From the NCBI GenBank assembly GCA_002269645.1, contig NIVC01001548.1:62001-126000 (forward strand): 64,000 bases of DNA, in the 5' to 3' direction. Source of the DNA: Macrostomum lignano. Its lineage: Eukaryota. Of this stretch, positions 32,601-35,600 are shown piece after piece; within the stretch, counting starts at the first letter, position 1, and each line of letters opens with the position of its first letter. Position numbers and translations under genes: made by a program. Under the pieces are notes generated by a model that saw only the letters and a program-made list of their open reading frames with translations, was not told where the DNA came from and ran no database searches.

Positions 32601-35600
32601 CCGGCTGCTCAGCGACTTTTGTCTTTTTAGTTGCCATCGAGACAGCAAATTTAATAGAAAATTAAAGAATAATATTTAAAATTACATGCAGTACAGCTCT
32701 TAAATCTCGGGCCGCCACGCTCTGCTTCTCCTCACTCCTCCACATCTCCTCACTCCCCTGCGACTCTCCCTACTCCTGTCTCTTGTAACTCCCGACTCTT
32801 ATCCTTACCGACTCTTATCACTCCCGACTCTTATCCTTACCGACTCTTATCACTCCCGACTCTTATCCTCACCGACTCTTATCACTCCCGACTCTTATCC
32901 TTACCGACTCTTATCACTCCCGACTCTTATCCTTACCGACTCTTATCACTCCCGACTCTTATCCTTACCGACTCTTATCACCCCCGACTCTTATCCTTAC
33001 CGACTCTTATCACTCCCAACTCTTTTCACGCCCGACTCAATCTGCCCATGGATTAGCCCCCCCCCCCACCCGATATGCACCCAGGCCTCTGCTCTCCTCC
33101 CTCAGCCAGCCACACACGCAGCCTGATTCGAGCCCGAGGCCGTCACTGGCCAGCCGCGGGCTCCTTCGGATCTCCGGGCCAGGCGGACTGGGCCGCCGCT
33201 GCTGCACCCGCCCTGCGCTTCCTGCCGCTTTTCCTTAACAAGCGGCAGCAGCAGCAGCAGAAGCAGAAAGCTGCATTGAAACATGAATTTTAATTTTTGT
33301 GACGACAAGAAGAACGATAAATTAATTTGGGCTCAGTGAGTGGCGCGGAGGTCAGCCTTTGCCTTGCGTGTGTGGCTGGCCGGGACGCTGGGGAGGGGAG
33401 ATGGAGAAGAGAAGCAGACAGGCGGACAGGCTTTTAGGAAACAAAAAAGGCGAGACGAGCGCATCGGACTGCGAGGATGAGGAAAATAAAAATATGCTTC
33501 TAGTTTTCTTTTCATTGACCGCCCCGCCCGTCCACCGGTTGCCCTCCCCCCAATTTCCGCTGAAGTCCACGTTCAAAGGAGGCTGGGGAGAGAGGGCAGA
33601 TTTTGATGAAGTATGGGGCGGCCTACTCGCTTTTGTGTTGTGTTTGTTTTACTGAAATCTCTCCGACAAGGCCCTCATTTGACCTGTCTTGGTGCGGTCT
33701 CTGTTGCTATGCTGCTCGCAAATAAAAAACGAGCATGGCTGTTTTTTCATAATTCCTTCCTAGTTTTGGAGCCTCATCACGAATCCAATATGGAAGCTGC
33801 AGAGGGTATTGAAGCAGCATAAGTTGTGAAAGAATAAAGAAAAAAGAAAAAAGTGAGGGACGACAGAATCCGAGAGTGAGTGTCTGTCTGTCTGTCTGTC
33901 TGTCTGTCTGTCTGTCTGTCTGTCTGTCTGTCTGTCTGTCTGTCTGTCTGTCTGTCTGTCTGTCTGTCTGTCTGTCTGTCTGTCTGTCTGTCTGTCTGTC
34001 TGTCTGTCTGTCTGTCTGTCTGTCTGTCTGTCTGTCTGTCTGTCTTAGTGTCTGTCTGTCTGTCTGTCTGTCTGTCTGTCTGTCTGTCTGTCTGTCTGTC
34101 TGTCTGTCTGTCTGTCTGTCTGTCTGTCTGTCTGTCTGTCTGTCTGTCTGTCTGTCTGTCTGTCTGTCTGTCTGTCTGTCTGCCTGCCTGCCTGTCTGTC
34201 TGTCTGTCTGTCTGTCTGTCTGTCTGTCTGTCTGTCTGTCTGTCTGTCTGTCTGTCTGTCTGTCTGTCTGTCTGTCAGTCTGTCTGTCTGTCTGTCTGTC
34301 TGTCTGTCTGTCTGCCTGCCTGTCTGTCTGTCTGTCTGTCTGTCTGTCTGTCTGTCTGTCTGTCTGTCTGTCTGTCTGTCTGTCTGTCTGTCTGTCTGTC
34401 TGTCTGTCTGTCAGTCTGTCTGTCTGTCTGTCTGTCTGTCTGTCTGTCTGTCTGTCTGTCTGTCTGTCTGTCTGTCTGTCTGCCTGTCTGTCTGTCTGTC
34501 TGTCTGTCTGTCTGTCTGTCTGTCTGTCTGTCTGTCTGTCTGTCTGTCTGTCTGTCTGTCTGTCTGTCTGTGTGTCTGTCTGGCTGTCATGAACACAGAA
34601 GAGATGTGCCAAACAAGAGAGTAGCACTGCCATCCCGCAAAACCACAGCTCAGAGTTCAATGCCCTCAGAAGGCCATCAGCAGCCACTGGCAGTCCTTCG
34701 TCTGTCCGCCTCTCCCCTCCCCATCGTGGCCCACACACGCAATCAGGACTGCCGCCCCCTCCCAGCAGCCCCGTGCGGCAGCGCAGCAGCGGCCCCACCC
34801 GGCCAGGCCTTACCATGTAGGTGAGGTAGGAGATCCGAGGCAGCGACTGCGCCACGACATACTTGAAGGTGACGCTGGTGAGCACCAGGGTGAAGCTGAG
34901 CCGCAGCCTGTACTCGCATTTGTGCGGCTCCACAGCAAAGGTGGCAAACGACAGGCCCGAGATCATGAACTGGCGGGTGCGGGGGTGGGTGGCAGTTGCG
35001 GTACTCACCATGTAAGTCAGGTAGGAAATCTTGGGCAGGGACTGGTTAATGACAAACTTGAATGCCACGGAGGTGAGGAACAATGTGAATGAGAGCTGCA
35101 GCCGGGCCTCCGGCTTGTCCGCTCCCACGGCGAATGTTGCGAATGACAGGCCGGTGATGAAGAACTGAAATGCGGGCGGCGAGGAGGCGGCGAGATGGCC
35201 GCGCGGGGCGGGCGCCGATGTTGCGGTATTGCCGAATCTCCAGAGGGAAACCCACCAAAGGTAAACCCTCCAGCGGGAACACCCTCTAATGAAAGCATGT
35301 CGTCTACTGTATGTAGTCCTACCCAGCAGACACCCGCCCGGCACAAACCCACCTAGCAGACAACCACCTAGCAGACACCCACCTAGCACATACCCACCCA
35401 GCACATACCTACCCAGCACATACCCACCCAGCACATACCCATCCAGCAGACACCCACCTAGCGCATACCCACCCAGCACATACCTACCCAGCACATAACC
35501 ACCCAGCACATACCCGCCCAGCACATACCCGCGCAGCACATACCCGCCCAGCACATACCCGCCCAGCACATACCCACCCAGCACATACCCGCCCAGCACA

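Follow-up and report, generated by a model that had tools for sequence, protein, structure and literature searches.

We analyzed a 64,000-nucleotide stretch of the genome of the flatworm Macrostomum lignano (contig NIVC01001548.1; referred to here as the window), which carries the gene for a pentameric ligand-gated ion channel (pLGIC), BOX15_Mlig010629g1 (protein PAA66589.1, assembly Mlig_3_7). The window matches this contig at 100% identity over 35,378 nt, and a vertebrate or algal origin, considered on account of GC content and satellites, was rejected on that match. We found that exon 6 of this gene is present as two tandem homologous copies, 6A and 6B, and we consider it probable, at about 80%, that these form a mutually exclusive pair, with one copy in each mRNA and each copy encoding a whole pore module. 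The evidence that the two exons are ALTERNATIVES comes from Macrostomum gene models that contain only B, from pairs of isoforms in the nemertean Lineus longissimus, from tandem copies in Owenia fusiformis, and from membrane topology. All exon coordinates are window positions on the minus strand, read on the reverse complement.

Exon 6A (35164..35009) and exon 6B (34969..34814) were recognized by their sequence and splice sites, and each is 156 nt long, or 52 codons, in phase 0. The acceptor and donor of exon A are tttCAG/TTC and ATG/GTGAGT, and those of exon B are gccCAG/TTC and ATG/GTAAGG (the slash marks the exon boundary). Between the A donor and the B acceptor lies a C-rich spacer of exactly 39 nt (34970..35008), GTGAGTACCGCAACTGCCACCCACCCCCGCACCCGCCAG, a putative micro-intron that is in frame if retained and then translates as 13 residues. 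It is the sole small, repeat-free intron-like interval within the channel gene. The two exons are identical at 38 of 52 amino acids and 109 of 156 nucleotides; 20 codons are the same, 18 differ synonymously, and 14 differ non-synonymously. This similarity is far above chance (tblastn of A against B, E = 3e-22), and no third copy of the exon was found in the 64-kb window. Exon 6B is used in the transcript-based GenBank coding sequence (CDS). Exon 6A falls outside that CDS, inside an annotated intron of 3363 nt. In a cluster of mutually exclusive exons (MXEs), neighboring homologous exons share the same length and phase and have separate splice sites; the pair has all of these features. An original prediction, made from the letters of this stretch, had described two phase-0 exons of this length and spacing with CAG acceptors, strong donors, and the same amino acid identity, and we reproduced every element of it.

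An AlphaFold2 (AF2) model of the protein was built on 44 homologues (predicted local distance difference test score, pLDDT, 85.3; predicted template modelling score, pTM, 0.73). The model contained strands over residues 2-183 and four transmembrane (TM) helices, with M1 at 185-208, M2 at 214-238, M3 at 244-272, and the last helix at 317-370. Its top Foldseek matches in the PDB were subunits of GLIC, GABA-A, GlyR, and ELIC (E ~1e-17, probability 1.0). Exon 6 corresponds to residues 197-248 of the model, which comprise the second half of M1, the M1-M2 linker, the whole of M2, the M2-M3 loop, and the first turn of M3. With the exon spanning half of M1 through the M2-M3 loop, we conclude that "pore module", the term of the original prediction, is accurate. 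When aligned to GABA-A gamma2 and ELIC, M2 bears the pattern R0', T6', L9' followed by SLP, and the predicted M2 numbering agreed with both the HMMER alignments to these proteins and the AF2 helices.

The assembled core protein matched the Pfam family PF02931 (Neur_chan_LBD) with E = 4e-7 (30 bits, cut-off 26), and its score for PF02932 was under the cut-off (22 vs 28 bits). A phmmer search of PDB sequences returned GABA-A gamma2 and bacterial ELIC about equally, at ~5e-15. The Pro-loop motif F/YPxD is present as FPLDVQ at the end of exon 4, and its residues F105, P106, and D108 are nearly invariant in the family alignment. Neither of the two Cys-loop cysteines, 13 residues apart, is present, and the gene is therefore not placed among the classical metazoan Cys-loop receptors. 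Both exons carry a Glu at -2' (PEAR in A, CEYR in B). The best 120 protein matches came from flatworms, annelids, nemerteans, molluscs, rotifers, and brachiopods, with the same Cys-less features. Judged by its sequence, the gene is a pLGIC and belongs to the spiralian clade of "Cys-less" Pro-loop receptors (Jaiteh et al. 2016, PMC4795631), whose members have neither the Cys-loop cysteines nor a second Cys-loop and carry an acidic residue at -1' or -2'. It has in common with Cys-less Pro-loop receptors, including planarian gabrg1/2, the missing Cys-loop cysteines, the FPxD motif, the Glu at -2', and spiralian best matches. To our knowledge, the family is absent from vertebrates, insects, and C. 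elegans, and it has already been proposed as an anthelmintic target. For the schistosome "Cys-less" ligand-gated ion channels, Johnson et al. (2023) reported a conserved Glu at -2', predicted cation selectivity, and cited planarian homologues in mechanosensory neurons (PMC9874803). Splicing is not discussed in PMC4795631 or PMC9874803, and exons or introns are not mentioned in PMC4795631. Johnson et al. used only the longest transcript per gene, and handled the schistosome genes with A and B pores as plain paralogues.

We compared the pores encoded by the two exons. Exon A is ELIC-like and corresponds to the family consensus, with Q2', T6', L9', A13', and F16'. Exon B has Y-1', R2', V8', T13', Y16', VA at 18'-19', and a different linker, and it retains the Glu at -2'. 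The differences listed in the original prediction, at -1', 2', 8', 13', 16', 18'-19', and in the linker, were all correct, and we found four beyond that list: F/M and T/S in M1, P/C at -3', and K/R in the M2-M3 loop. The sequence (Q/E)NRLQLSFTL at the pore entrance hardly varies across ~120 family members from six phyla (73 distinct exon-6 segments), departing only in the B-type exons and in one Owenia paralogue, which has RLKLAF. Given this near-invariance, we conclude that exon A carries the ancestral pore and that exon B is derived. The A and B isoforms would give pores differing in conductance, selectivity, or blocker sensitivity, and they may co-assemble. Exon B would set an Arg at 2', a helical turn above the Glu that is conserved at -2'. 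From what is known of structure and function in pLGICs, it is a reasonable inference that a ring of Arg at 2' beside the ring of Glu would alter conductance or selectivity.

In Macrostomum, three near-identical loci have GenBank models (PAA66589.1, PAA65257.1, and PAA70238.1), and all three join exon 5 to B and B to exon 7, with A skipped. The M. lignano GenBank annotation was derived purely from RNA-seq and Trinity transcripts through StringTie and TACO (PMC5730564), so mRNAs containing only B are real, and most of the product does not include both exons. The TACO setting, --isoform-frac 0.75, discarded minor isoforms, those below 0.75 of the major one (PMC5730564). Because of this filter, the missing A isoform is weak negative evidence.

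The direct orthologue in Lineus, which spans 136 kb, has 11 RefSeq isoforms. Isoforms X1 and X2 (522 aa), and likewise X5 and X6 (514 aa), differ at 10 residues, all of which fall within the 52-aa segment, and one member of each pair is A-like and the other B-like. Nine of the 10 Lineus sites are among the 14 that differ in Macrostomum (hypergeometric P = 5e-6), and outside the linker the figure is seven of eight (P = 2e-5). Three of the changes are identical in the two species: T>S in M1, A13'T, and F16'Y. In Owenia fusiformis, two 156-nt copies lie in tandem with 206 nt between them; their acceptors are tttcag and atttcag, and both donors are gtaagt. Of these, the upstream copy (CAIIXF020000007.1, 48710-48865 in extracted-region coordinates) has RLRLAF, with Arg at 2', and is intact and unannotated; the deposited model uses only the downstream, A-type copy. 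Positions -1', 2', and 16' differ within the pairs of all three species. The Lineus isoforms also vary elsewhere, with insertions of FISSSSPQ or VSVH at the FVDQQ/EW junction and several alternative C-termini. FVDQQ/EW is an intron position in trematodes and annelids and is continuous within exon 5 in Macrostomum.

Both exons are maintained by purifying selection, as predicted. Between A and B in Macrostomum, synonymous divergence (dS) was 1.08 and non-synonymous divergence (dN) 0.25, giving an omega of 0.23, and each type is conserved across phyla. Among the three Macrostomum copies, exon A shows two substitutions, both synonymous, and exon B none; the spacer has one and is always 39 nt long, and the flanking introns have 14. 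A more divergent M. lignano copy in UniProt, 92% identical overall, keeps A at 51/52. Taken together with the B-only transcript models and the Lineus isoform pairs, the conservation of each type across phyla supports the predicted use of the exons as alternative, mutually exclusive pore modules. We propose that Macrostomum uses exon A as well, probably in an isoform that is minor or restricted to certain cell types.

Several points weigh against a mutually exclusive pair. No transcript or model containing exon A was found in the RNA-based M. lignano annotation, and with the three loci B-only, the case for current use of A in Macrostomum is drawn from conservation. Two UniProt entries from another M. 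lignano assembly, A0A1I8GSY0 and A0A1I8GBW9, join A to B and remove exactly the 39-nt spacer; if these were transcript-derived rather than ab initio models, double inclusion occurs. The Lineus RefSeq isoforms are Gnomon models. The intron-length mode in neodermatans is ~32-37 nt, and such introns are routinely spliced (PMC4040987), and the spacer of the Owenia pair is 206 nt.

If the B-only models are taken as complete, exon A would be a relic, an unused and recently silenced pseudo-exon in intron 5 of a gene that makes only the B isoform. An A-only, transcript-derived Macrostomum protein was likewise not found in protein database searches. Those searches were word-prefiltered, and with an A-isoform query they missed even the window's own, 100%-identical GenBank protein, which surfaced only when the protein of the Paragonimus B gene served as query; a 109-aa junction query centred on B returned three irrelevant A-type matches and nothing else, because the prefilter is too insensitive for short queries. 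We consider a relic unlikely, since exon A has an intact open reading frame (ORF) with canonical CAG and GTGAGT sites, and is identical at 47/52 residues to the A-gene exon of anciently diverged parasites and at 45/52 to Owenia A. The differences among the three near-identical copies being synonymous only, and the 51/52 identity in the more divergent one, also argue against silencing, as does the Lineus orthologue, which uses both types. Further, minor isoforms were filtered from the annotation. It is far less probable still that both exons are included in series, with the 39-nt intron spliced or read through, to give a subunit with a duplicated M2. Besides the two UniProt entries, in which B follows A directly, one model reads through the spacer. 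No premature stop would result, since the spacer keeps the reading frame and the exon length of 156 nt is divisible by three. However, the RNA-based models skip A at all three loci, none having both exons. The five older models of the gene conflict with one another (A plus B, read-through, A only), as ab initio predictions do. The Lineus RefSeq isoforms contain either A or B, one copy each, and the single-gene orthologues likewise have one copy, without exception. A second M2 helix in the subunit would reverse the membrane orientation of M3 and M4. We know of no pLGIC with a fifth TM helix, and the comparison of the AF2 model with PDB structures fits a four-helix subunit.

With a mutually exclusive pair as the favored reading, we considered how double inclusion might be avoided. 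Nonsense-mediated decay (NMD) could not police it, because 156 is a multiple of three. At least part of the barrier to double inclusion would come from the 39-nt spacer, which contains both the A donor and the branch point and acceptor of B. Candidate branch adenosines for the B acceptor lie at most 13-23 nt from the A donor, a distance far below the human steric criterion of 50 nt (PMC5740500). The spacer is also just under the C. elegans minimum for intron excision of ~40 nt; in that species, half of the MXE clusters with multiple-of-three lengths use the steric mechanism (PMC4165533). The original prediction held that the short spacing enforces exclusivity. The part that stood is that the spacing is compatible with a steric block. 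Enforcement itself is unproven, with short neodermatan introns, a longer Owenia spacer, and two UniProt models in which the spacer is excised; the flatworm introns and the Owenia spacer together indicate that a steric mechanism is neither proven nor conserved. We regard a steric block by the spacer as plausible, at even odds. No short introns that could calibrate the Macrostomum minimum were found in the window or the gene; the annotated introns of the gene are 0.9-13.5 kb. We also looked for RNA structure that would explain exon choice and found none, as a 421-nt region folded no better than shuffled sequences (z = +1.18). The A donor UGGUGAGUACC (35000-35010) pairs over 11 nt with the LVLTS codons of exon B (34876-34886), by 10 Watson-Crick pairs and one G-U pair, in the minimum free energy fold. 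This helix was rejected as evidence, since one of its size is expected by chance in 800 nt, and it is not conserved in Owenia.

The age of the pair was examined in a neighbor-joining tree of the 52-aa exon-6 segments with 1000 bootstrap replicates. In parasitic flatworms such as Schistosoma and Paragonimus, the two exon types belong to different genes, an A gene and a B gene, and each of these has only one exon 6. Macrostomum B grouped with the B-gene exon of trematodes and cestodes in 89% of replicates and Macrostomum A with the parasite A-gene exon in 58%, and Macrostomum A and B grouped together in 0 of 1000. Macrostomum B is identical to its parasite counterparts at 43/52 residues. The most economical reading of these sequences would be an ancient MXE pair, followed in the parasites by gene duplication and reciprocal exon loss. 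We tentatively propose that the A/B pore switch predates the flatworm-nemertean split, that Q2'/A13'/F16' alternates with R(V)2'/T13'/Y16' and thereby changes selectivity or conductance, possibly through the Glu(-2')/Arg(2') pair, and that the parasites later made two genes of it by duplication and reciprocal exon loss.

A competing account, also possible but doubtful, is that tandem duplications arose independently in Macrostomum, Lineus, and Owenia, that the flatworm B exon entered the Macrostomum gene by conversion from a B-type paralogue, and that there was no ancient shared MXE. Support is weak at the deep nodes of the exon tree (32% for flatworm B with Lineus B, and 7% when the Owenia upstream copy is added), and pleistoannelids have one exon. 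For Owenia, the differing sites showed no significant concordance with those of Macrostomum outside the linker (P = 0.23) and the order is reversed, with the R2' copy upstream, so that pair may be an independent duplication. A tree built from the remainder of the protein, with 113 ungapped columns, supported the orthologue group at 99%; its relevant nodes were below 50% and gave no date, relative to Macrostomum, for the duplication into parasite A and B genes, which leaves room for independent origins. Against them stand the grouping of Macrostomum B with the parasite B exon and not with A, and the shared sites and identical changes of Macrostomum and Lineus. In addition, protein searches found no stand-alone A-only or B-only orthologue gene in Macrostomum. 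Every single-copy orthologue examined has exactly one exon 6 with the same boundaries. No relic second copies were found in the Schistosoma B gene, the Paragonimus A gene, Capitella, Paralvinella, or Ridgeia. The same swap was not found in paralogous members (molluscs, and other Lineus and Tubulanus genes), where isoforms differ at the termini only. Capitella teleta has two tandem genes of the orthologue group ~2 kb apart (KB292506.1, 11174-11329 and 17993-18148 in extracted-region coordinates; dS 0.72, dN 0.03). Each has a single A-type exon 6, indicating duplication of the whole gene and not of the exon.

The CDS of the channel gene maps exactly onto nine exons, from 57987 to 28613. Exon 1 (57883..57987) carries the start codon of PAA66589.1, and exon 2 (43831..44364) encodes a long N-terminal extension that includes a conserved helix. 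The ligand-binding domain begins with its first beta strands in exon 3 (41843..41971), continues in exon 4 (39471..39671), which has WNP and the Pro-loop FPLDVQ without flanking cysteines, and ends in exon 5 (38333..38590; donor GTCAGC), which also encodes the first half of M1. Exon 7 (32239..32559) encodes M3, a short M3-M4 loop, and M4, and exon 8 (30594..30641) the region after M4. A conserved C-terminal exon (29665..29745) is skipped in the GenBank CDS and present in older models, and it matches the …RRTST..LH tails of the Owenia and Lineus orthologues. The last coding exon of PAA66589.1 (28613..28849) is read in another frame in the paralogue PAA65257.1 (DPVLPDGG… against NKIQFYQM…). Considering the skipped exon together with this disagreement in frame, the deposited C-termini look like minor or aberrant isoforms.

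The large introns of the channel gene (28000-45000) are all packed with micro- and minisatellites. These include (TGTC)x177 at 33881-34588, (TGTC)x178 at 41009-41716, 22 copies of a 52-nt unit at 31043-32212, 22-nt arrays at 36356-38292, 38 copies of a 21-nt unit at 38621-39425, and 47 copies of a 16-nt unit at 43042-43797. Elsewhere in the window, ORFs of a non-LTR (long terminal repeat) retrotransposon lie on the plus strand at 10519-14201, with endonuclease/exonuclease/phosphatase (10519-11460), reverse transcriptase (RT; 11464-12528), and RNase H (13182-14201) domains. More RT-like fragments, with no Pfam match, lie on the minus strand at ~18057-21178. A 259-aa ORF on the minus strand (15187-15963) has a weak match to a C-type lectin domain (E = 7e-5, barely above the Pfam cut-off) and may represent a lectin gene with one exon, located downstream of the channel gene.

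If the proposed history is true, the channel would offer a clean, datable case of isoform-to-paralogue subfunctionalization in a family of candidate anthelmintic targets. The pore swap would explain why schistosomes and tapeworms carry two close genes whose main systematic difference lies in M2. A complete exchange of the pore module on a constant ligand-binding domain is also a natural experiment on the residues that set selectivity and conductance. For splicing biology, the pair offers multiple-of-three exons with a 39-nt spacer in a phylum whose lower intron limit is unusually small. The analysis further corrects two annotations: the M. lignano GenBank CDS lacks exon A, and the Owenia model lacks the upstream copy. 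Our literature search found no paper on a pore-exon swap in Cys-less spiralian pLGICs. The new part is limited to the device occurring in this branch, being shared by at least a flatworm and a nemertean, replacing an otherwise invariant pore, and corresponding to two genes in the parasites; the Lineus isoforms were already deposited in RefSeq and the Macrostomum B isoform in GenBank.

Several known systems resemble parts of this one. Exon A matches ELIC in the alignment at the pore-facing positions Q2', T6', L9', A13', and F16', whereas exon B departs from it at 2', 13', and 16'. ELIC is a bacterial homopentamer without introns, and the overall similarity is low (phmmer E ~5e-15, Foldseek sequence identity ~19-20%). 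With respect to splicing, mammalian alpha-tropomyosin exons 2/3 and C. elegans let-2 exons 9/10 and egl-15 exons 5A/5B are homologous multiple-of-three exons; the intron between them is no longer than the species minimum, which prevents joint use of the upstream donor and the downstream branch point (PMC4165533, PMC5740500). By comparison, the M. lignano spacer is at the C. elegans limit and above the flatworm micro-intron mode.

The original prediction also stated that no pLGIC with a switchable M2 exon had been described, and this was wrong. In insect nicotinic acetylcholine receptor (nAChR) alpha6 (Dalpha6), TM2 and the TM2-TM3 loop are encoded by the mutually exclusive exons 8a/8b/8c (PMC6393475, PMC8505678). 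In both systems, tandem homologous mutually exclusive exons of a pLGIC give one gene different pore linings. Orthology to alpha6/alpha7, which have a Cys-loop and vicinal C-loop cysteines, was not found, the Macrostomum gene being Cys-less and falling among spiralian ELIC-like proteins. The two devices differ in branch, cationic Cys-loop nAChR against Cys-less Pro-loop, and in origin, which is independent, and we conclude that the Macrostomum gene lies outside the alpha6 system and is similar to it only in mechanism. The alpha6 gene has three variants and not two, together with exon-3 alternatives and adenosine-to-inosine (A-to-I) editing. Beyond the region encoded by alpha6 exon 8, the Macrostomum exon includes half of M1 and the selectivity linker between M1 and M2. 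In C. elegans unc-49, a common N-terminus is spliced to alternative C-terminal channel modules, and B/C heteromers form; the half-maximal inhibitory concentrations (IC50) for picrotoxin are 0.9 vs 166 uM (PMC8841521). It is a precedent for one gene with two pores and mixed pentamers of changed pharmacology, although unc-49 swaps multi-exon C-terminal halves, comprising part of the binding domain and M1-M4, rather than one 52-codon exon.

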